This document shows positions 14,701-64,000 of a DNA stretch of 64,000 bases, piece after piece (the first letter of the stretch is position 1; the number at the start of each line of letters is the position of its first letter). The notes below the pieces were generated by a model, which was given only the letters and a program-made list of their open reading frames with translations, was not told the origin of the DNA and ran no database searches. The stretch covers positions 2,875,172-2,939,171 of the forward strand of contig NW_002060945.1 in NCBI RefSeq assembly GCF_000150275.1, given 5' to 3'. The translations under genes and the position numbers were made by a program. The stretch is from Trichoplax adhaerens (taxonomy: Eukaryota; Animalia; Placozoa).

Positions 14701-15789
14701 TACAAAATCTGTCTTGCTTTGATGCGAGTTTATGACCATAAAGGCGCCGAAAAAGACACAACGGAATAGAATTTGGATAATCTAAAGAATTTTTATTATT
14801 TAAATGTTTTATTTTTATAATTATCTAGAGGATATTTAGCTGTTTTAAAATCAATAAATGAAAAGTCCATACAAGTATCTTTCTGTTTTAAAGACAGGAC
14901 TGAAGTGACCTTGTAAGTGAAAAGGGATCAATCAAGAAAACTTCCCACACAGATGAATAAACGTATTGCATATAGATTGTTACATGCGTATTATTGTATT
15001 AAAGGAAGTTGGCTTAAACCTTACTACGAAGGAATATGTTTACTACATTGCAAGCAATAAATAAGTACAAACGTCGGTAATGAAACTAAGTAAAATAAAT
15101 TTTTAACACTTTAATGAACATTTAATTGCCGTTAAAATTTACTACAAAATTAGTAGTTAAAGGAGTAGAACTGAAGAATTTCATTTCATCAAGAGTGGCA
15201 AGAATTAAAAAATAGATATGATCTTAATGGAACAAATACTTAGTTCGTTAGCATAGCTAATATACTATGCAAAGGCAGATACGTCGTTACATTAATTAAA
15301 GAAAATTAAGTCAGTAAATTAACATTTTATGAGACAATTTGTAATTTTAGTGCATAATGAAGTTATCAGTACGAATAGAGTATTGTTCTTATAGGCATGT
15401 TACTCAATATTTCATCAAGCTCATATTTTTACTCTAATAAAACTAGAATAAATAGAATTTCAAGTCACTGTAAGTGAAGATTTATGTGTAGCATTTGCAA
15501 CCACTACTTTTCTACTTAGTTTATAAAATAGGATAAAACTGAATTACAAAAAGTAAATAATTTTTAAAGTTTTCCTTACCGCCCTCTCATTGTATATAAG
15601 ATACGGTAGATAGCAAACCTACGTATGTTTAAAGTACGAATATTTTTTCTCGTATCTATAAAGATATACCATATTTTTAAGAATTGTAGCAAGAGTAGTC
15701 GCTTACAATGGTCAAAGTTAAATTAATACATCTAGAATGCAGAGTTATATTTGCCGTCAAGACAGATTTTAATCGAATGATTTAGAATA

Positions 15790-16374
15790 TTATTGACTAG
15801 ATGTATTATGGCCTTCCTTTAATATGTCCTCTAAATGTTTAATATAACGGATAGCGGCACGTAGTGTTTCTACCTTTGATAATCGTTTTTGGTTGAATTT
15901 TCGTGGTAAATGATCTCTTAGTTTGGCATAGCCTTCATTGACGTGACGAACACGAATTCGTTCCCGTTCATTTCTTTTATGAATAAACGAGGGTTCTGAA
16001 TTAAAGTCTAGGCAAGGCGGAAAAGGGATAACATTCATCGACCGACTAGTAGATAATGAAGAATGGTGTTCGATATCTTGCTGATGAATTGTAGATGTCA
16101 CTTGACTTGAACTAAAATTTATAGAATTAGCACTAGCACTAGCTGTTACAGTTATTGCTTGCGTGGGGGTATGATTATTTGTCGATTGATGAGAATGAGA
16201 ATGTTGTTGAGAATAATTTGCTGTTGTTGCTTGAATTGGCAGGGATACCTTAGTCGTGTTATAATCGTTTCCATTAGGACTAGAACTTCTATTAGCACTA
16301 TAATCACTAGTATGTTGCTGAAGGGAAGGCTGATGACGATCGAAGCTCATTGCGAAAGAAGAAGTAATAGCCAT
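15790..16374 (-). CDS. ASCb: Achaete-scute family bHLH transcription factor, ASCb (ASCL3/4/5-like), 194 aa
   Basis: EPSFIHKRNERERIRVRHVNEGYAKLRDHLP...KRLSKVETLRAAIRYIKHL carries the ASCb-diagnostic EPxFIxKRNERER, VNEGY, HLP and KRLSKVETLRAAI motifs; Ser/Thr/Gln/His-rich N-terminus. Confidence 0.95.
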   Translation of the reverse strand: MAITSSFAMSFDRHQPSLQQHTSDYSANRSSSPNGNDYNTTKVSLPIQATTANYSQQHSHSHQSTNNHTPTQAITVTASASANSINFSSSQVTSTIHQQDIEHHSSLSTSRSMNVIPFPPCLDFNSEPSFIHKRNERERIRVRHVNEGYAKLRDHLPRKFNQKRLSKVETLRAAIRYIKHLEDILKEGHNTSSQ

Positions 16375-19300: not shown

Positions 19301-22300
19301 AATTTACTGTTATTTATGAATTAATTCAGATAATCATTAAATAATGATTAAATAGTATTTAAAAATACTTTTTTATCTATCCTGTAACTCATATCTTATA
19401 AGCGCGCTTTTTGTTATCCACACACATCAACTACCGTCTATCTACCGTATAATGATGGCTTATTATCTTAGCACAACGCATTATCAATCGTAAAATATTT
19501 ATCTGGCATCGTCAATAGAATTCTGTATCTGAATTTTGGACATATTTCGACTAATTATGAATCTATCTTGTATTTTGTGGAGTGTAGTATTTTCTTTATC
19601 TTGTAAGATTGATGTACAGTAGTTTACCGTCGTGTTGCAGACGTATCCAACTGTGTGTAGACATAATTAGATGGACTTTGAAATGTAAACTCAATGTTGA
19701 ATTAAACTTGGATCCAGTTACCATTTCATTGTAACAGAAATTGATTAAAGAAAAAAAATTTAGTCTAATTATGCATTGATTACACGTCGACGGTTCGTTT
19801 ACTAAATAAACATTAAAAAAACGTTCAATACTAGCCAAATGGATTTTATTGTTATCACGGGTGTCCAAATTAGATAACAATAGTTCAAGTAACGGCATGA
19901 CGAAATGATATCTAATAATGACATTGATAGTTCTTAATCTACTTTCACCTTGACTTACATCGTTAAAAGTTGTTCATAAATCAATAAGAGCATCGACGAA
20001 AATTATTCATCTACTCCTTTGCATTTGCTAAGAACCCTGACTAATTTACTGACAATTACTAGAATCTTACAACTAATAAGCTTACATATTGAAACGTACT
20101 CATTATTAACAGATGTGACTTATTATCGACGATAATAATTTATTTCTAAGCTTTGAAAAGGAGCTAGACGAATCTGGTATATCCTACTCTTGGGACACAT
20201 TCAATCGCAAGATTATCTGCACCTTATACAACTAGTTTAAATTTTCAGCTAATTATTTTAAGTTAATTACGTAGGAAACGAAATGACTTAAAATAATATG
20301 CCCAATCACTCAAGAAACGGCATGCTTTAATAAACAAGTGCCAGTAAACTAATTTCTATTCATGGACTCTGTACTATATAAAGTCGATATCCAGGTCCTG
20401 TCCAAAGTTAAACAGATATTATAATTTAATAACTTATAATCTACTTTGTTAGCGCACCATTACGATTTATCAGCACTAATCCTAAAAGATACTTTTATCG
20501 ATAGAAAATTCTTTTGTCATCGAGTGCACCTTGTCCTGTTTTAATTTTAATATTCCTTTTGATCCTCGTAAATTTCTAATTCTATTCGCGAAAATGCCAA
20601 TTGAAGTAGAAAAGAATTAAATTTTAGCTTGATTAATATACAATAAAATAAGAAATTGAAGATGAATGTACCATGATCAAATTTACTTACAATTGACGTC
20701 AATAAATAATTCAATATTTGATGTACGAACTTTGCCATTTTTATCGCCATTGAATAACTATAATGACGATTTTGTTGACACAGCTTACACATCTTGCTAA
20801 AGTATAATAGTATCCACCTTTAATAAGTTAAATTAAATTTTTCTATTGTCTTGAATACATTGGCGTGGACAAGAAGTTTACTTTAGTTAAAACTGATGAT
20901 CAGGCAGACGGAACTTATATATCGCAACGTAGAAAATTAACTTCGTAGTGAATTACATTAGATAGCTTGTATATTTTAAAAACTATATTAGTGACACACA
21001 ACAGCCAAAAAATCTATATTGTAGAGAATTATGTTCGATTATTCTTACGTTGATGCTAGTAGGAACGTTACTATTCGATAAATGTGGTATGCAAGTTATA
21101 ATTTTGAAGCATCATAATATCCTCGACTAGCAATTCCTTTAAATTATATTATTACAGGTAGCCACAAGGCACAGTTTAGTGGTATACGTTAACCTGATAA
21201 ACTGTACCGGTAATAATATAACTACGTATTTTTTTCATAAAACATCGGCATGTCACATTTGAACAAGCCACAATAGTGCCCGTTTACGCGCACTTATCTA
21301 CAAGAAATAATTGAAAATTAATCATAACATCTATATAGTTTAACCTATATGCGAGGCATTCAGATTAAAAACTATCACCGGATTAAAAACTTCTATTTAA
21401 TCTTTATGCTACAGAATGGATACAGTAAGTCCAATATTTGATTGTTTTGAGAAATCTTTTTTCATTTCTACCAAGAGATATTTGGGAACTGAATTTTTTG
21501 CATCCGCTTATTCGTATATGATTTCCTTCAAATGATTGAATGATACTGAAGGCAATCAGTAACTGAGAAGTAACAATGAAAACTTATCAGACGACTACAG
21601 ATAAAAGTAATTTAATTAACCTATTAATGTCTCCTCGCCCATAAGTTCCTTTTATAATTAACATGATGGTAATCATGGTAAGTTAAATCAACGACGCAAT
21701 CTGTGTCCATACATATACAAATTATTCAGGTTGACTTATTTGAAAAAAGTCTATTCTACATTGTCATGTAAATTACCTGATACAAATCGATCCTCGTCTA
21801 CTTTGATAGTCAGCGTTACTACAGTTGATTTTAAAAATTTTATCCTTGGTGATGTATTAATTGTCTATTTTAACTACTAATAACATTGATTTAGTATACT
21901 TTGACTAACGACAATTATGCATACTGATGATCGTGGCCATACTTGAATTAAGATAAATGTATTCCAATAATGATTACTTAATCTTGTAGAGCCATGTTGA
22001 ACTTTAAGACTGATATCAATATCGAATTGAACACATTTAAATTAAAATAATTTCGAGTATATCGCATGTATTACATCATGTCATCGCAGAATCGGTTTCA
22101 GTGGTAATTTCTACATCTGGAATGCGGAATCTCATCGTTTGACGTCAATTTTTGAGCAAATAGAACATTTGTAGTCATACAAGATACTCCTTCTAAAATT
22201 ATGGTAATTTTTGTAACAGAATTACTTAGAGTGCGGTATATTAAACCTAAATCTTTTATAATCTCATGTACAACATATACATTGCAACTTAAATTATACT

Positions 22301-35800: not shown

Positions 35801-35974
35801 AATTGATCATAATCATCCTTTTTCAAAGTAATGTAACGATCTTCTAATCTTACCTCTCACTAATTAAATTTTATTTTTGTTAAATGATTAGTGCTTCCAA
35901 AATATTGCATCATTCAAGCATACCGTTGTCTATTTATGAAAATATCCATTAAAGAAAGAAACGAACTAATAAAC

Positions 35975-36508
35975 ATGAATCCATTATCCGTAGATTCCAT
36001 ATCACCGGTCGATTCCGACTCTAATCTCTCGCAATATTCATTTACAAATTCATCGATACCTTCAATATCATCATCAAAAACGTCGACAACAATTACAATG
36101 AATCAATCAGATCCATGTTTAGATACATCTTCAGGATATTTACCAAATCATCAATCAAACCAATTTGTCCTTTCTTCATACCAAAATGATGAAGAAGAGA
36201 CTACAGTGCACCTGAACAATCAATCGAAGCGTAAACATTTGAAAAAATCGAAATCTAAAGAATCTGTTACGGCCAAACGGCGCAATGAGCGAGAGCGACG
36301 CCGTGTCCAATTGGTTAATGATGGCTTTAGTGAATTACGCAAGCATGTCCCAACAGATTCCGAAAATCGCAAATTATCGAAGGTCAAAACTTTAAGATCG
36401 GCTATAGAATACATCAAACAATTGCAATCGCTACTAGAAAAGCAAACTGTTCCAGAAGCACCTAGAAGAAAAGTTTATGCTCGTGTATGTCAAATACCTA
36501 CAGCATAA
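35975..36508 (+). CDS. Achaete-scute family bHLH transcription factor (ASCa-like / non-ASCb), about 177 aa
   Basis: [56 protein letters not shown]. The ORF track starts at GTG 35891; in-frame ATGs are at 35936 and 35975, and the latter has the better context (AAACATGA). Confidence 0.93.
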
Positions 36509-48875: not shown

Positions 48876-49427
48876 ATGTCTACTAATCCCATAGCAACAG
48901 TTTCTCCTCCATCGTCTTTAGCCATGGCAAAAATGAATAACGAAGGAGAATTACCGCCAGGGTATAGCACAAGCAATCGCTATCGATTACAAGTGAATCC
49001 TAAAGATGCTCATAACAGTATAGATTCCTCACTTCTCACTTATCAAAACAACATCAACCACAACAATAATATCCACAATCATCATAATAACAATAACAGT
49101 AATAATAATAATCATCATCATAATAACAACGATAGCGGCAGCCATGGTAAAAGGCAGCGAAGAGGCAATCATTATAAAAATATCAACCACCATGGAATCA
49201 TGCATCGTCGGAAAGAAAAAGAACCAGAAATGGTAGAAAGAAGAAATGAACGAGAGAGAATGAGAGTTAGATTAGTCAATGATGCCTTTAAACTGTTACG
49301 AAGCCATATACCGGTCGATCCTCGTCAGAAGAAACTTTCAAAGGTCAATACTTTGCGCTTAGCTATCCAATATATAAAATACCTACAACGATTAATTGAA
49401 ACCAACCCTCAACCCCAGTCATCATGA
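48876..49427 (+). CDS. Achaete-scute family bHLH transcription factor with Asn/His low-complexity tract, 183 aa
   Basis: EPEMVERRNERERMRVRLVNDAFKLLRSHIPVDPRQKKLSKVNTLRLAIQYIKYLQRLI; TATA box upstream, AATAAA at 49702. Confidence 0.95.
   Translation: MSTNPIATVSPPSSLAMAKMNNEGELPPGYSTSNRYRLQVNPKDAHNSIDSSLLTYQNNINHNNNIHNHHNNNNSNNNNHHHNNNDSGSHGKRQRRGNHYKNINHHGIMHRRKEKEPEMVERRNERERMRVRLVNDAFKLLRSHIPVDPRQKKLSKVNTLRLAIQYIKYLQRLIETNPQPQSS
49047..49130 (+). repeat. Coding (AAT/AAC/CAT)n trinucleotide tract (poly-Asn/His)
   Basis: Encodes NNINHNNNIHNHHNNNNSNNNNHHHNNN within ASC gene 3. Confidence 0.85.
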
Positions 49428-54957: not shown

Positions 54958-57900
54958 GGGTTAAAGTCCATATCTGACTGAATAAGCAGTAACGTTACCG
55001 CTTCTCCAAAATTTGTGATGTTTTAAAATTAATTGCTTCGTAATTCTAAATCTGATATTTCATGTATTGCTTTCAGGAATGAAAATTGCCTTGAACTTAT
55101 TAATCCAGGGTTAAATTCCACACTTACAGAATACGCCACAATATGATGACAATTTTAAATGCCTTTACGTTTAACTTTAATTTCACCATATTTACCGATA
55201 CTTTCTAACTAAAAATTTTACGATTTTAGAGATAGAGTTTCCAAACGATATACTATACGCTTAATTGTGCTAAGCCTAACATTGAATATGTCTAAATGGC
55301 ATTACTAAAGTACAACCATAGCTCCTATCACGAAGTGAATTCCGTTTAACATTTGATCTATATCACGGTGACGTTTTAGAATCGGATGAGTAGTTACCAT
55401 GATGTTTAACTACAGAGAAATGTCGTAATTAATCTAGCGTGACAATGTGAAAGCACGACTTAACGACATATTTACGAGTATATCACTCAAGAAGTGATTC
55501 TAATTGCTAACCCTCTCGTGAACTAAAATTGTCATTGATCATGATTCTTTACAGCAGAATTAAGTTAGCGATTATGTAGCCCGGATGCAGAAAATGCAAA
55601 CAATGTAACAGGATGAGTCTGTAGGTAAATATCTACGTAATTAAAGTCCATCTTTAGCTCTTAATCTTGCCATCAAGCAAAATCTGTTTGATACTTAGTG
55701 ACTGCGATAAACCGTAGTTATAAATTAATCTAGCTATCAGGGAATCTCTATAATGTTATCTAGTGAAATATATAATTTTACTTATATAATGTATTAGGCA
55801 CTTATACTACTAGAGTTCAACTTTCAAATCTAACCTTATTAAACATTAAATCAGCTTAATATTCGTTATACACACAGTAATGGCTAGGTATTGGGTCGTT
55901 CTCTGTAATTATTATAAAATTCGAATATGATAACTAAGGACAAAGGTCCATTATAACATTATCAACAGTAAGATAGAAAAATCGGTATAGCCGAATCGAA
56001 CTCAATTTTATGCTTCCACATATTTCCAATATTAGGTTCTGATACAGAAAATATAGTATAAAATAATCCAGTATGGTGATTCTAAAGTATTAAATATGTA
56101 CAACATGAAAATCAAGTCCTAGTTCCTAATTTTATCAAAAATCAATATTTATGATATCCAACTGTTATTATGACAGAATGAAAGACAAATAATATCACTA
56201 TCATATTTGAATTCACTGATTAGATCAAAGTCCATTTTAACGCTCTCACCATGATTAAAATATGCTGTTATACCTAGATGTGATCACCTTTTTAAAATAG
56301 TAGAATTGTGCTTTCATGCACTTTCAACATCAGGTCTGGGAGATTGAAAACATAATTAATTAATTCGTCTGGTTGATTTTAAAGGTTTAGCAAATATTTG
56401 CATCACTATAATTTTAACGTTGGCTTACAAACTTTGCATAAATCAAAGCCGGTGCTAAATCAAACATTATTGCTGCCTGTGAGAGTTATATATTAACTTT
56501 AGTTATCGCAAGATCTCATTGCAAGAAAGATTAAGCGTATAACTACGAATAAAGGTTAAAGTCCGTTTTAATCTCATCAGTATAACTATGAAACAGCTCA
56601 GCTGGCCAATTTATACCCACCTTTTGGCTGTATGCGTATACTGTCGAAGGCCAAATTTCAAAACTTTAATATTTCAAAGTCCAAAGGTTATAGTCCAGCT
56701 ATTACAAATATGATTACTATCTAGGATTAATCCACTATATTGCTCTATAATTTCATATTAAAACTGACAAATCAATCGAAATTTGTTGGATTTAGAAGAA
56801 TTATTAATACTAGAAAGATAGCAGCTGATTTTAATTCAAGATCAAATTGATTTTATAAATTGAGGAAACAAACTTTCAAGGATGCAGTTAAATATATTGA
56901 AATCAGAAAGTTTAGCTGATCAAATATGATTATCCATGTGTAAGAATAATTAATTAGTGAGCAAATATTAGTCTATATCATATTGAAATTCTGATAAATT
57001 AAGAGGATCAAAGTCCAAATCGAAATCATTGTTTGTCTGGAGTATAATTCTAAAGTTAAAGCTTACTTTCATTTATAGTTCCTACCAAGATACTAATTCG
57101 CCTTTCTGCTTGGGTCCAAAGTCCACGAGAGAATAATGAGCTAAAAGACTGAGATTTCTGTCTCAATTATTCTTATATACTTGTATATCTCGGCCAAAAT
57201 AACATGGAAGTAATCTGTAATCGATATCGTCAAAGCGACAATAACACATTGTTATTTCGTAGCCATTACATAGATTAGTACCCACGTAATAACGGCGTGC
57301 TATGTCGTTCCTTTAATTGGAACCAGATTGACTAGATAGTCATGCAATGACGCATTCATTGAAGGAATTATCTCGACTTTGACATCAAAGTTCAAAGTAC
57401 AAAGTAATCAATTTGAATAGCACAACATTCTTGTAAGATCACCTTGAATGAAAATTATACAATCTACTCCGTCTTTACGTTACGTAATTAAAATATTTCA
57501 ACAACAAATTTATAATTAGAATATTACACAGTTCAATATTTTAGTGTCACGTAGATGATGCGTAACTCATGATCCTATGTTTACAGAACTGTACAGTTAA
57601 ACGGCTAAATCAATCACCTTATTTTACAGATAAATAAATAATCAGGATATGGCACAAATATCTGTTGGAAGACACGATAGATAAAGGTATACAATATAAT
57701 AAATCAGAAATGATGTATTTCTACTGAATTTACAGAGTTGTACTTAAATGGATATCAACACAGTCTTATGGTTTTAATGATATTAGACAACTTAAAATGA
57801 TAAAATATCCACCGCAAAGTTAAAATAAACACGTTACATAGCATAATGAATCAAAATTATATTTTCTTACTCGTATGCCTTCGCAATAAATCAATAAAAG

Positions 57901-59030
57901 CTTTGTGAATATAAATAGTTTTCTACAATACATATTCCTGCTATCAAAACAATAGTGAATCATGATTATATTTTCTGATCAAGTTTCAGTAGTCATCAAA
58001 ACACGTTGCCTCTATAATATGTAGCGAAAGACTTTAATAGATATTTGGTTGGAATTTTAGCCCATCCATCTATATTCATCAAAAATGATCAATAGGAAGT
58101 TCTATAGACATTTAGATCAATTCCGTCCATAGTTTTCAAGTGTCAGTGAAATCAATACCAGCACTGGTTTAATTTTTTCTTAAATTTAATAAATAACAAT
58201 AATACAGTAATTGGAACGTAATTAGCTAATTATAATCAACAATCGTCCGTGAGAAAGTCCAAAGTTTGATATTTGTCGTCATCCCTTCTAACTAGATAAA
58301 AATCGAAATAAAAAGTTATAATTAGACGATGTCCTAACGGTCATTATGGTTGTTGATTATCTGCTGAGATAAGAAGCATAATATTACGAAAAAAGGTAAT
58401 AGACAGGCCATAAAAGATAAAAATGTTTCGGAAACTTTGTACATCATTGGCAAAAACAATTCGTAGATGGCATCTTTTATTGATAATTAATTAATCACAT
58501 AGTCGGTGAATGTCGTTAAAATGAATCTATCTTTGAAATACTTATAATTTATTCCGGCAGCACGTCCAAACTGATTGATAAAACTATATCATATTATGTC
58601 ATTGTACTGTGGTTCCTAAAAATCAACAATCGAATATCATAATAACTTAATTTAAAATTTAGCATTTCACATTTATCAAATCAAGTAAAATAAAGCAGAG
58701 CTTTACTTTATTCTGTTTTGCATAAGGTGTGTGCTAATAATTGCCCTTTATTGCTAAACCAATGTTGATGAAAGAAATCATTGGAACTATGCTACCTTTA
58801 TCTATATCCAATTGGTTTCAAAGAACTTTTGTTAATTGTAAATTAAATTTTATTTCACGTAAAGTTGAAATATTATTGTATTATGTAGTACAAAATCATT
58901 ATTTACGTTCGATTAATTCCTTAAAATTACACGTGAAAATTAAATAACAATTTGATTTACTTTTGAATATTAATTTTGAAAGATAATAAAACAACTACTG
59001 TTAGCTCACTTGAACTTTGTACTTTGTGTT
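54958..59030. promoter_or_regulatory. Homotypic cluster of HNF4-type nuclear-receptor DR1 sites between ASC genes 3 and 4
   Basis: GGGTTAAAGTCCA 54958, GGGTTAAATTCCA 55108, TTAAAGTCCA 55641, AGGACAAAGGTCCA 55937, AGATCAAAGTCCA 56222, AGGTTAAAGTCCG 56553, ATTTCAAAGTCCAAAGGTTATAGTCCA 56671, GGATCAAAGTCCA 57005, GGTCCAAAGTCCA 57113, CAAAGTTCAAAGTACAAAGT 57386, AGTCCAAAGTTTG 58256, TGAACTTTGTACTTTG 59011. Confidence 0.65.
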
Positions 59031-61229
59031 ACAACGGTAATAAGATTCAGTTGTTCGTATATTCAAAATATTCACATATTATATAACAATCGATAGCTCT
59101 ACTTTTTGACTACTGATTAGTATTGCTTTAAAAAATAATTTATAACCAACACAGTATCGCTTCTCAGTAATTACCTTTAAATATCAAATACCGTAATCAA
59201 TTATAATATCGCATATGAAATAGTTAAAATTTAACAATATATTCCAGTATTATTTCTACAATTATCTGTTAAGATAATCGAAACTATGTCTATCATGCAG
59301 TCTATTGGAGGAACACTACTATTACATATCACAATTAATAATGAAAATGATTTCATTTCATCACTTAAGTGAGGAATATCCCAGGAGATGTGTCGAATCG
59401 CGCGCACGAGACAAAATACTGTACATAAAACCTCGAATCAAGCTCATTTTGACTGGGAATAGCTACATTACGTCTACAATTTTTTATCGTCGCTCTTTCT
59501 TTATGGCTTATTAGGTGCCAAAAGTGTAAAAATACTATCTATATAAATTGTAATTAGCTTTTAGTACAAGTTTAGGACATGGCTACAGCTACTTTAATTT
59601 CTATTTGAAGATGCGAGCTATCTTTATCTCCAATAATATCATTTTAAATATTTCTACATCAGATCAAATCTATGGTATGTTGCTTACTAATATAAAATTT
59701 TATTTCCGAAAGCTGCTTGGTTAACTAAAAGAGTGATCAAGTTTCATTCGTAGGTTAATTAGTCAATGCCATCATATTAGGATGAGTTATACGATCTAAT
59801 TGTCATTATATAGTATTTTGCTGATGTATTTAAAAGTGGACTATAATTCAATAAAAGATGTAGTAATAGTGCTAAGAATGGATTCTATTAGTTAATAACA
59901 AAAAACCATAGTGTTTTAGTACAAATTCCATCGAGGCATTATGTTAATTAAGAAATAGAGAGCATGCTTACTATTTTTGTACGTTTGTACAATTATGCCT
60001 ACCTAGTCCCAAGTGCTAGTTAAGAATAAATTGAATAAACAGCCACTTACTATTTCACAATATTATGCCTTATGGGAGAACATATAAATAGCCAAAAGAT
60101 ATTTACTTGGCAAACGAAGGAAAGAGCTGATATAATATCGTATCTAATATGATCGATATTATCCGTAACTATATCATAGCAGTCGCGGAATGATAGTCCA
60201 CATCGATAAAAAATAAAATTATCTTTGTACCGTTATTTAATGCCAGTTAAACAGCCCATACTACACCTCCAGCCTAGAATATATCGAGATAGAATCTAGA
60301 CTAGCCTATTTTTAGCTTAGATAATTTAATTTTAAACCGACGACATTCATTTATTCATCAATGTCAATCATGCCTGATGTTCCAAAGTATTTCATGTTTT
60401 ACGTACTCCTACTTCACTTGTTAACCTATAGAAATATATAGTACTGTATATCCAATAAAATGCTCCCATAGACGGCTAACCTAAATTGTTAAATCCATCG
60501 CATGATTTTGATGCGTGCCAGTGGAAGTTAGCTAATTTGCGAAATGAATGAATGCTTCAACTATCTGATCACTGATGTATTCTGCTGGGAAATCAGTACG
60601 GTATTAAATCCACTATTGGTCAGATCCTTTCGTTTAGAAATCATTGATTTATTCCTAGACTCATCAACTATTCGTCTTGTAGTTTCGATTCTACTTTACA
60701 CCAGTCCGCAGTAAAAATCTTATCTGAAATCAAAACATCAAATCAATCAAAGTGTTGTGTTGTCTTAATACTATTTATTCATCATAATAAATGATAAAAA
60801 AGAATTCAAAAGTACGGCCATTTGATGACTCAAAAAATTGTTTAGATAAACAAATGAAATTATACACGAGCTTATCTAGCTAGCGATAACTGCAGCAATA
60901 GATATAATAGCATTAACCATATGTTACATAATTCTAATAAAAGAATTTCAAATCTCTACTAATTAAGATTAAAAATACTAAAATTATAATAAGCAGTAAA
61001 TCTAAAAGCAATGAAGTTCAAATTCTAGAATATGACAAATTAATTAGATTATTAAAAGTCAATGACCAGTTTCAAAGAGTTATTATTTTTACTTTCTGTT
61101 AACTTCATACTATTTAAATCGTAATAGCAAGAAATATTAGGTAATGGTCAATATTTAATTTAATCTTGTTATCTTAAATGACATTCAAAATCTAGTCAAA
61201 TCATATTCGACCGTATTTATAATAGAAAC

Positions 61230-61733
61230 TTAATTAGTGGCAGTATCGTCGGCTAGTAAATCCTTCAAGTGATGGATATAATCGATAGCCATACGTAGTG
61301 TCTGAGCTTTCGATAATTTTCTTCGTTTGCCGATCACAGGCACATGCTTTCTGAGTCGAGCAAACCCATCATTCACTCGCTCAACTCGTTTCCTTTCTCT
61401 TTCGTTTCTTCGTAAAGTTTTTACAATTTTCGCAGGATTTTCGTATAGTCCACTTACAGAATGTTCCTCGACGCAGTAATAGTTGCCATTTGTACAAATT
61501 CCTGGACTTGATGCGCCAGAACTGCAATAAGGATCACCCATAGCAGAACTTGAGCGGCTCGTACTTTCACTAAATTCCTCGACATCTTGGATATCTGAGT
61601 GGTAATAGCCATAACAGTTTTCGTTACTCTTCAGCGGCTGTTGATATGATAACGGAAACGATGGCATTACATGGGTTTGAACATGGAAGGCCGCACCTGA
61701 TTGATAATAATCGCTGCCGGTATGCGCCATCAT
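61230..61733 (-). CDS. Achaete-scute family bHLH transcription factor (divergent), about 167 aa
   Basis: TLRRNERERKRVERVNDGFARLRKHVPVIGKRRKLSKAQTLRMAIDYIHHLKDLL. First ATG at 61733 (the ORF track starts at TTG 61751); TATTTAAG TATA variant at 61869-61862. Confidence 0.95.
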   Translation of the reverse strand: MMAHTGSDYYQSGAAFHVQTHVMPSFPLSYQQPLKSNENCYGYYHSDIQDVEEFSESTSRSSSAMGDPYCSSGASSPGICTNGNYYCVEEHSVSGLYENPAKIVKTLRRNERERKRVERVNDGFARLRKHVPVIGKRRKLSKAQTLRMAIDYIHHLKDLLADDTATN

Positions 61734-62126
61734 GTAGAGTTGGATAGGCAAATGAAAATTAAATGAAAATTGGATTGAGAAATATGATCAATAATATCAA
61801 ACTTGATAAGCACAGTTTGATCTGACAACTATCTGCAAATTCATCAGTAGTTAATGATCGCCTTAAATACTATCGGATATCGTCCATGTGCTAGCTTAAT
61901 CATAAAGGATATGTGACAAATAGCATGCAATTGTTATTTACAAACACTGATTGTCCGCAATTTTACTGTCTATGTGGCAGGTTGATATTTGACGTAATTA
62001 AATTAGACAAATACTTGTTCCGTTAAATAGAAACAATTCTCATCGTTTTGTTAATATTCCCATACTTTCACAGTCTTATTGTCAGTATAAGACAAAATAT
62101 GCCTATTTTCCTTAATAGAATGAAAT

Positions 62127-62187
62127 TGGACTTTGATAGCAAATACAAAATTTGAACTTTGTTATCAGTTATTTTGGACTTTGATCA
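62127..62187 (-). promoter_or_regulatory. Three HNF4-type sites in the proximal upstream region of ASC gene 4
   Basis: TGGACTTTG 62127, TGAACTTTG 62153 and TGGACTTTG 62175, i.e. CAAAGTCCA / CAAAGTTCA on the gene's sense strand, about 400-450 bp upstream of the ATG. Confidence 0.6.
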
Positions 62188-64000
62188 CTTAGATTCAAAG
62201 GAAGTACAAGACATGTTGCTCTCCTTGAATTTAGTGAATGGTAGCGCGGTAAAATTTTCAAGAAGTTGTAGTAAATTAATCAATGAATGATCTGTAATTG
62301 AAGTAGAAATAATTATGCTGCAGTTACTGTCTACAATTTATCTTGTCCATAGGACAGAAATGGTTCGCTATTACCGGCATTAATTACATCTTTTCAAGTC
62401 ATAATGGATATTACTATCATATAGTTAAAATAATTTAACGACAAAAGACAAACCACGTATAATACATGCATTTATTAGTGTAAATCTTTTACAAAGATAT
62501 GTAGCGCTATAGTAAAATTCTTTACTAGTAGGTTGAAAACTTACACGTGGATGTCGGAAAATTTTATAGCCTTTACATTATAAGCAATGCAACTTGTCGG
62601 CTTTTACTATTATATATATAAAGCTATTAAATATATTAGCAAGTATGCTCTAATGTGTCTCCATGTCAATAAAAGTATTATATTTTTAGCGAAGTAGATT
62701 TCAGGTAGTATTTATGGCGCGAATTATCGCGAAATCTGTAAAATGTAGAATTTCCAAAGCCATCATTGCATGTTATTAGTGTAATTACATCAATACGAGT
62801 AAGGGTGTGTAATCCGACTTGAATCTTGTAATTGCTAGCAAAAAAATTCCATATTACGGTACATCTTTTAACAAAAGTGCGGATTAAGTCTTACACTACA
62901 TAGATTGGTATCGTGTGCAAAATAAAATTATCATTTCCTTTAGTAAAGTCAGCTCAGCGATGAGAAATATCAATGAAGAGGATTCATCCTAGCAATTTAT
63001 AATAAGGCTGCTGTCCCCTTTAATCCTTCAATGAAGGAAATCATTCACATAGCCATGAATCTATGAAGATCTACAAGCCATACATTGGAGTCGGTAGTAG
63101 AAAACTAAATGTTCAACGCTAACGAAGAAAGGTGTGCCCGGTAGTCCTTAAATTAATTCTACCATATCAGCTATTTGCCTTTGAATCGTTAAACTACAAT
63201 TTTATTACTTGACAAAGTAGTCTTCAATGTTGTTTTATCATTCACTGGAAATATACAGCTACGTTATAGTCATAGTAAAAATTTCTGGAATGTTCTTTAA
63301 TTACTGTTTCACTTATTCATTATACATCTAGAATTTCAATATACAGTAACCAGTTAGTTTACAGAGTTTCTATCAATCATTTCATAATGAACCCAGTGTC
63401 TTGAAATATCCTTACGTATACAGTATAGTAGCCCTTCATCTAAATGATCTAATCGATCAGTTAATTTTTTCCATAATTTTATAACGCTCACTGATAATAC
63501 CACATATTACAAGCAGAAAATCCTGCTTTTGCCTAAGGATGATTCTAAATGTTTACCTAGTAATACTCTAATAAATTAGAGCTTGCTGTACAGTGTACAA
63601 TGGCAGATACTGCTTGAAAAGCAAGTGCTTGTAGCCGCTCATGAGACGGGGTTTTACTGTTTGTACAGTATTCTTAAATCGATACAAAATAATGTTATTA
63701 TAATTGCATATTAAGCTCTATCTTACCTTTTCCTGATATCATAGCCTTATCTAAGCATCACCAAAGTTTTATTGGCAAACAAACTAAATCTAAAGCACAG
63801 TTACACTGTGATGCTGTATTACACATTACTGTACTACAGTATGTAATCCAGAATACTGTAAGTTATTTCTTGCTGATAATAATAATTAATCATTACTGTA
63901 TAATCTTATCAATTTAGATAAAAGTATGTGATAAATACCCTATGTTACTATCTGGTAGTGCAAGTATTCCTATAGAAGTTCCTGGGTTAATGTATGTTCT

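Follow-up and report, generated by a model that had tools for sequence, protein, structure and literature searches.

What does a dense run of nuclear-receptor-type binding sites do in unique non-coding DNA between two achaete-scute genes? This question is raised by positions 54958 to 59030 of a 64-kb stretch of the placozoan Trichoplax adhaerens (contig NW_002060945.1, positions 2,875,172 to 2,939,171), which was analysed whole and is called the window here. The sites are direct repeats of nuclear receptor (NR) half-sites at 1-bp spacing (DR1), of a type in which the 3' half-site AGTCCA is preceded by AA, often as the 9-mer CAAAGTCCA, the HNF4-specific motif (H4-SBM). An initial annotation had proposed that they serve a neighbouring achaete-scute (ASC) gene. 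We found the feature to be real and statistically exceptional: among 635 of the 662 genomic copies of the 9-mer, it is the densest group of the HNF4-specific motif that does not belong to a repeat.

A cluster of DR1 sites in single-copy DNA

The sites of the distal cluster are given below, with p5 denoting position 5 of the DR1, and so on.

54958..54970, + strand: DR1 GGGTTAAAGTCCA; 5' half-site one mismatch from RGKTCA; T at p5
55108..55120, + strand: weaker DR1 GGGTTAAATTCCA, 150 bp from the 54958 site; a similar flank of 23 nt is common to both
55635..55650, + strand: AAAGTCCA as 3' half-site, paired with a poor 5' half; ACGTAATTA overlaps it
55937..55950, + strand: AGGACAAAGGTCCA, a DR1 variant whose 3' half is GGTCC
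56222..56234, + strand: DR1 with exact H4-SBM, AGATCAAAGTCCA
56553..56565, + strand: DR1 AGGTTAAAGTCCG
56671..56697, + strand: chain of four half-sites, ATTTCA-A-AGTCCA-A-AGGTTA-T-AGTCCA, which includes an exact H4-SBM
57005..57017, + strand: DR1 with exact H4-SBM, GGATCAAAGTCCA
57113..57125, + strand: DR1 with exact H4-SBM, GGTCCAAAGTCCA
57383..57406, + strand: chain AGTTCA-A-AGTACA-A-AGTAAT, with weaker half-sites
58250..58266, + strand: AAAGTCCA followed by AAGTTTGA, with a poor 5' half-site; the last + strand site
59005..59030, - strand: chain AGTACA-A-AGTTCA, the first site past the switch in orientation

Seven exact copies of CAAAGTCCA lie in the window, at 56226, 56675, 57009 and 57117 on the + strand and at 62127, 62175 and 19672 on the - strand, precisely where the initial annotation had placed them. 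It had put the expectation below one per window; dinucleotide shuffles gave 0.44 ± 0.64 (0 of 100 shuffles held seven), and the genome frequency of 662 copies in 105.6 Mb gives 0.40 per 64 kb (the genome scanned comprises 1414 contigs at ~30% GC, with the window at G000:C1412:2875172-2939171). Four of the seven are packed into 900 bp. With up to two mismatches allowed, the 13-mer RGKTCAAAGTCCA had 20 matches in the window where 3.4 ± 1.6 were expected (0 of 100 shuffles), and 11 of these matches, 10 of them on the + strand, fall in the ~2.4 kb of 54958-57401. The earlier count of about a dozen DR1-like sites, nearly all on one strand, is thus borne out; the chained half-sites that had been quoted were located at 56671-56697 and 57389-57401, and shuffled controls and genome background were both exceeded. 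A blind k-mer screen of 54958-58300 against the remaining window ranked AAAGTCC/AAAGTCCA first, with seven copies on the + strand and none on the - strand where 0.14-0.22 were expected (P ~1e-10 to 4e-9).

The excess holds at genome scale. By a Poisson scan estimate, the whole genome would be expected to contain 2e-5 clusters of four CAAAGTCCA in 900 bp and 6e-6 clusters of seven copies of the 8-mer AAAGTCCA in 3.3 kb. Genomic copies of CAAAGTCCA were enumerated by splitting on flanking bases, which yielded 635 of the 662, the remaining 27 all being on contig C1414; among those listed, the cluster is the sole place where 1 kb holds four copies. Groups of three occur among them at just two other places, C1410:59.8-60.7 kb and C1413:6.640-6.643 Mb, both of them tandem repeats with identical flanks at each copy. 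By a sequence-level definition, the region is therefore a homotypic binding-site cluster, beyond chance at genome scale. The two tandem repeats differ in period, ~400 bp for the first (L007, G000:C1410:59853-60686), which adjoins an actin exon, and ~200-380 bp for the second (L008, G000:C1413:6639997-6643334). Upstream of the window, a further 57 kb contains four more exact copies of CAAAGTCCA, each on the + strand (G000:C1412:2818536, 2829305, 2865149 and 2866277), and the surroundings of the ASC cluster hold 11 copies in ~120 kb against ~0.75 expected.

The sites had been described as lying outside any repeat family, and this description stands. The 4.2-kb region is single-copy, with a self-match only in the genome; Tandem Repeats Finder (TRF) found no relevant tandem array in it; and the 60-nt flanks of the sites aligned to one another with scores of 8.9, against 8.3 ± 0.4 at random positions, with residual similarity in two site pairs only (54948/55098, and 56227/57010 over ~35 nt). 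Exact 8-mers thus persist in single-copy DNA amid unrelated flanks, which argues for selection on the sites. A hidden gene or RNA was ruled out, as there is no open reading frame (ORF) of at least 70 amino acids, no Rfam family and no gene model across the interval in the annotation of GCA_003344405.1, which we take to be Trichoplax sp. H2 (H2 below). This 3.3-kb unique non-coding stretch beside an ASC gene is probably a regulatory element.

The orientation of the sites is strongly ordered: 11 of 11 NR-type sites between 54963 and 58254 are on the + strand, and 5 of 5 between 59018 and 62182 are on the - strand. Composition predicts 58% on the + strand, which gives P ~0.003 for 11 of 11. Spacing is irregular (108 to 860 bp), and nothing recognisable was found at the point where orientation switches. 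A mirror-image duplication about 58.6 kb was rejected on mismatched distances, and the idea that all sites converge on gene 4 is contradicted by those at 59018/59025, which lie downstream of that gene and point away.

Site geometry and the expected reader

To examine the geometry without circularity, sites were ascertained on AAGTCC alone and the six bases at the 5' half-site position were then inspected. Of the nine cluster sites so collected, six are preceded, at 1-bp spacing, by a 5' half-site that departs from RGKTCA at no more than one base (GGGTTA, AGATCA, AGGTTA, ATTTCA, GGATCA and GGTCCA); 1.2% of background hexamers come as close (P=2e-10), as does 1 of the 13 AAGTCC sites in the rest of the window. 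The cluster sites are therefore dimer-type DR1 elements rather than monomer sites or chance words.

Their specificity appears to be that of HNF4. In protein-binding arrays and chromatin immunoprecipitation sequencing (ChIP-seq), xxxxCAAAGTCCA was bound by HNF4alpha and not by RXRalpha or COUP-TF2, both of which disfavour TC at p10-p11 (Fang et al., PMC3384313). The H4-SBM core occupies p5-p13 here; it is exact in four copies within 56226-57125 and in two more at 62127-62183, and five further cluster sites read [T/G]AAAGTCC[A/G]. Within 54958-58300, TC rather than GT stands at p10-p11, as that work specifies; AGTCCA occurs eight times, always on the + strand, and AGGTCA not at all, against 0.9 expected. 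No canonical RXR/COUP-TF DR1 was found in the region, which contains neither AGGTCA nor AAAGGTCA, and its three weak canonical-like matches all belong to the same chains. The assignment to the H4-SBM type, not the canonical RXR/COUP type, was thus well founded. An NF-kappaB-like reading of AAAGTCC was set aside, since the flanking GG and CC of that consensus are absent.

A suitable receptor is encoded in the genome, as had been supposed. We found exactly four loci with the NR DNA-binding domain zf-C4, in agreement with the reported complement of T. adhaerens, namely HNF4, RXR, COUP-TF and ERR (PMC5624297). One of them (L003, C1403:1647888-1648094) has the P-box CDGCKGFFRR and is the sole one of the four with both Asp and Arg at the specificity positions; its best match in the PDB is the DNA-binding domain of HNF4alpha (3cbb, 3.9e-40, against ~1e-27 for other receptors), and a complete ligand-binding domain follows 3 kb further downstream. 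The other three have CEGCKGFFKR (RXR-like and COUP-like) or CEGCKAFFKR (ERR-like), with Glu/Lys at these positions. Recognition of the H4-SBM depends on Asp69 and Arg76, a pair that HNF4 retains 'down to Trichoplax' (PMC3384313). Because only the HNF4 orthologue carries this pair, it alone among the four would be expected to read the cluster sites. A weak fifth ligand-binding domain match (PF00104, E=5e-4) at G000:C1412:3904528-3904668 (- strand), which has no zf-C4 partner, may be spurious or a fragment.

Gene 4 as the likelier target

Four ORFs in the window encode ASC-type basic helix-loop-helix (bHLH) proteins (Pfam HLH, E 1e-18 to 1e-20).

15790-16374, - strand: ASC gene 1, bHLH
35891-36508, + strand: ASC gene 2, bHLH
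48876-49427, + strand: ASC gene 3, bHLH; 5.5 kb from the cluster, an alternative or additional target
61230-61751, - strand: ASC gene 4, bHLH; the likeliest target

The explanation that we favour, to which we give about an even chance, is that the cluster is a homotypic module through which HNF4 acts on ASC gene 4 and possibly also on gene 3. Positions 54958-58266, with the outlier at 59005-59030, would form a distal cis-regulatory module of about a dozen HNF4-type DR1 sites, and homodimers of the single HNF4 orthologue would occupy both these sites and three conserved sites in the gene 4 promoter. The distal array might add to or buffer the HNF4 input at the promoter, by activation or by repression, and gene 3, on the other side of the cluster, may share the element. 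That HNF4 binds here, that the stretch acts as an enhancer and which gene it serves are all inferred. The initial annotation had named gene 4 (or 3) as a direct HNF4 target; gene 4 emerges as the likelier of the two because its conserved promoter has motif content in common with the distal array, and the directness of the link is best kept as a prediction.

The promoter was compared with a Logan contig of a distant placozoan, L001 (SRR30664517, 1957 bp), whose encoded protein is 49% identical to that of gene 4 and matches it best (score 338, against at most 202 for genes 1 to 3); it is clearly the gene 4 orthologue. The promoter features are as follows.

62122..62188, - strand: promoter-proximal triplet of two exact H4-SBM with CAAAGTTCA between them, sense to ASC gene 4
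61992..61999, + strand: ACGTAATT, in a promoter block conserved in L001
61861..61905, - strand: core-promoter block with TATA-like TATTTAAG, the putative gene 4 promoter, conserved in L001

The triplet lies ~370-450 bp upstream of the gene 4 ORF and ~300-350 bp upstream of the TATA-like block and likely start. In the upstream alignment, all three sites are in register with L001, within fully conserved blocks of 10-13 nt amid diverged sequence, and L001 carries a fourth site of the same NR type. Between 61752-62330 (- strand) and L001:600-1247, the TATTTAAG block is conserved with ~35 flanking bases, as are a TTACGTCA/ACGTAATT block and a ACATGTCTT block. L001 ends 260 bp past the gene 4 orthologue, so this comparison covers the promoter. 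A protein search with the L001 orthologue returned no further placozoan copies, and two metagenome scans with the conserved promoter patterns found nothing. A motif acting at the RNA level on the + strand is unlikely, because the conserved promoter copies sit upstream of the putative start and on the opposite strand.

The H2 assembly reaches the cluster (contig NOWV01000034.1; L011) and is 99.06% identical across the locus. In its middle promoter site, a C-to-T change turns CAAAG into TAAAG and leaves the AAAGTTCA half-site intact. A small rearrangement or duplication of ~136-250 bp distinguishes the two assemblies at ~60107-60617, just downstream of ASC gene 4.

The identities of the genes bear on what the module might control. 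A four-species placozoan atlas lists, in Table S4, four clustered ASCL-like genes (Hhon_g00681-g00684 with their orthologues), and its Table S3 counts the wf_g3088 orthogroup as one of the transcription factors with raised expression in peptidergic progenitors (PMC10580291). No entry for HNF4 and no module assignment for gene 4 appear in the rows consulted. By combining Table S4 with the layout of the H2 contig (it begins between genes 1 and 2), paralogue similarity (genes 2 and 3 are the closest pair) and exact-sequence look-ups, we infer, rather than read from a single look-up, that gene 1 is TriadT7436, gene 2 TriadT54311, gene 3 wf_g3088 and gene 4 TriadT54312/TrispH2_003872 ('like ASCL3/4/5'). 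The public H1 protein set has gene 1 as a partial model of 90 amino acids and lacks gene 3. On this mapping, gene 3 would be the one listed as a peptidergic-progenitor factor, which is the sole piece of expression information found for these genes; the role in secretory-cell specification that had been suggested for gene 4 is conjecture.

Several other words and sites accompany these elements. An isolated full DR1 lies near gene 1:

19672..19684, - strand: ATTTCAAAGTCCA, in the sense orientation of ASC gene 1 and 3.3 kb upstream of that gene

This 13-mer is identical to that at 56671-56683, and a weaker AAAGTCCA is found at 14862 (+ strand), downstream of gene 1. The word CGTAATTA/ACGTAATT(A) occurs on the + strand at 55425, 55635, 57482 and 58216 in the distal cluster and at 61992 in the conserved promoter block. 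Four copies of CGTAATTA in the cluster compare with 0.11 expected, which is marginal after correction for ~3000 k-mers tested; ACGTAATT has three copies inside the cluster, all on the + strand, and recurs inside the conserved gene 4 promoter block. This word may mark another input, from a homeodomain or bZIP factor. At four GATCAAAGTYCA sites, TTGA(A)WTC stands 3-20 nt upstream, a pattern that was defined post hoc and that could be either a composite element or a relic of shared origin:

56195-56234: TTGA(A)WTC with GATCAAAGTYCA
56975-57017: TTGA(A)WTC with GATCAAAGTYCA
62170-62215, - strand: TTGA(A)WTC with GATCAAAGTYCA
L001:675-705: TTGA(A)WTC with GATCAAAGTYCA

Across the genome, GCAAAGTCCA has 160 copies where its reversed control has 66, and for TCAAAGTCCAA the corresponding counts are 86 and 43, which suggests selection on the extended HNF4 motif genome-wide.

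Competing explanations and known systems

Several observations weigh against an HNF4 module acting at a distance. Placozoan regulatory elements lie mostly near promoters or in first introns (PMC10580291), and contacts between promoters and distal enhancers are few, 241 in T. adhaerens (PMC12221973). Two cluster sites have no recognisable 5' half-site, and p5 is T in four sites and G in one, where the human motif has C. The bare 8-mer AAAGTCCA shows no genome-wide excess (3394 copies against 3553 for its reversed control). Every AAAGTCCA site is kept in H2, which at 99.06% identity is uninformative on deep conservation. Uniform strand orientation, finally, is not expected of ordinary enhancers.

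It is also possible, though in our view unlikely, that the module is real and its sites are read by another factor, either an HMG-box protein (TCF/LEF or Sox) or one of RXR, COUP-TF and ERR. The HMG core WWCAAAG/ACAAAG overlaps many sites, WWCAAAG fits 3 of 3 promoter sites in the window and 4 of 4 in L001, and ATCAAAG occurs four times in the region against 1.05 expected; Sox motifs, moreover, are enriched near peptidergic-progenitor genes (PMC10580291). Against this, the invariant part of the sites is AAGTCC(A) and not CAAAG, four cluster sites having TTAAAG and one GAAAG, and WWCAAAG fits only three of the seven AAAGTCCA sites. Its seven copies in the region compare with 3.8 expected (P=0.09) and mostly overlap NR-type sites, three of the four ATCAAAG matches are the 5' parts of such sites, and Sox cores show no enrichment in the region. 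The C-to-T change in H2 breaks CAAAG in a conserved promoter site and spares the NR half-site; conservation with L001 reaches 3' into TYCA, which is dispensable for TCF; and the excess of 5' half-sites one base away, as in a DR1, suggests an NR dimer. For RXR and COUP-TF in particular, the disfavoured TC at p10-p11 counts against them, and their local orthologues, like that of ERR, have Glu/Lys in the P-box. A precedent for TCF does exist. Mammalian Ascl2 is a Wnt/TCF target, an ASC-family gene with multiple (A/T)(A/T)CAAAG sites in its promoter; here, by contrast, the conserved core extends into the NR half-site and many sites lack CAAAG.

A by-product of repeated local direct duplication of a one-site segment, since decayed, with no function or with function confined to the promoter sites, seems to us quite improbable. 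It would account for the single orientation of the 11 sites and for the flank similarity left in the two pairs, and the other multi-copy CAAAGTCCA groups among the copies listed are indeed tandem repeats. Neutral decay, however, would erode sites as fast as flanks, yet the other flanks are at random level while seven 8-mers and six 5' half-sites are intact; the irregular spacing and the lack of a TRF array also speak against it.

A very improbable alternative is that the cluster works, in an orientation-dependent way, as an architectural or boundary element that sits between the regulatory domains of genes 3 and 4, with HNF4 or another protein as its directional anchor rather than as a classical enhancer input. 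No nuclear receptor is known to serve as a directional loop anchor. The sharp switch from + to - between 58254 and 59018 and the sequence-determined chromatin loops of placozoan genomes would suit it, but the loop-anchor motif described there sits in Mutator terminal repeats at housekeeping promoters (PMC12221973), and this region is single-copy and transposon-free.

If the cluster is an HNF4 response module, it would be a known kind of element in an unexpected place, and the regulatory link is plausible. Literature searches turned up no paper in which HNF4 targets an ASC-family gene directly. In other animals, HNF4 is a receptor of digestive epithelia linked to fatty acids and nutrients. Placozoans have only four nuclear receptors and have kept the four-gene ASC cluster across genera, and their peptidergic cells derive from progenitors similar to cells of the lower (digestive) epithelium (PMC10580291). 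A bolder proposal, which we regard as tentative and rather doubtful, is that in an animal without neurons or gut the single HNF4 is wired directly to the ASC cluster, including the gene of peptidergic 'proto-neural' progenitors, through a dense, orientation-locked array, and that this link from a digestive programme to secretory/peptidergic specification would predate the cnidarian-bilaterian ancestor. The cluster offers a readily testable link between a gut and nutrient-sensing receptor and a family of cell-fate genes, since ATAC-seq, scRNA-seq and Micro-C data and alignments of four placozoan genomes have been published. If that link is true, HNF4-to-ASC would be a tractable network edge behind the emergence of neurosecretory cells from a digestive, mucociliary epithelium, and the cluster would join a small number of distal regulatory elements defined by sequence in a placozoan.

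How does the cluster compare with known systems? The label 'super-enhancer', which the initial annotation had applied, is unsupported; what the DNA contains is a homotypic cluster of HNF4-type DR1 sites. It resembles super-enhancers as a multi-kb array of putative sites near a cell-identity gene family, but these are defined by exceptionally high Mediator, H3K27ac and master-transcription-factor ChIP signal over stitched enhancers and are not recognisable from sequence. It is more like the homotypic developmental enhancers of Drosophila (Bicoid, Su(H) and Dorsal), with many sites for one factor, far above chance, in unique non-coding DNA that spans a few kb beside a developmental regulator; those clusters are normally of mixed orientation and lie in documented enhancers, whereas here orientation is uniform and activity putative. 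From the human H4-SBM element (PMC3384313), it differs in having ~12 predicted sites in 3.3 kb in one orientation, several with T at p5, and in lying in a placozoan beside a developmental bHLH gene rather than a metabolic one. With that element it has in common the identical 9-mer core, TC at p10-p11, a DR1 with a looser 5' half-site and a cognate receptor that carries the Asp/Arg pair.

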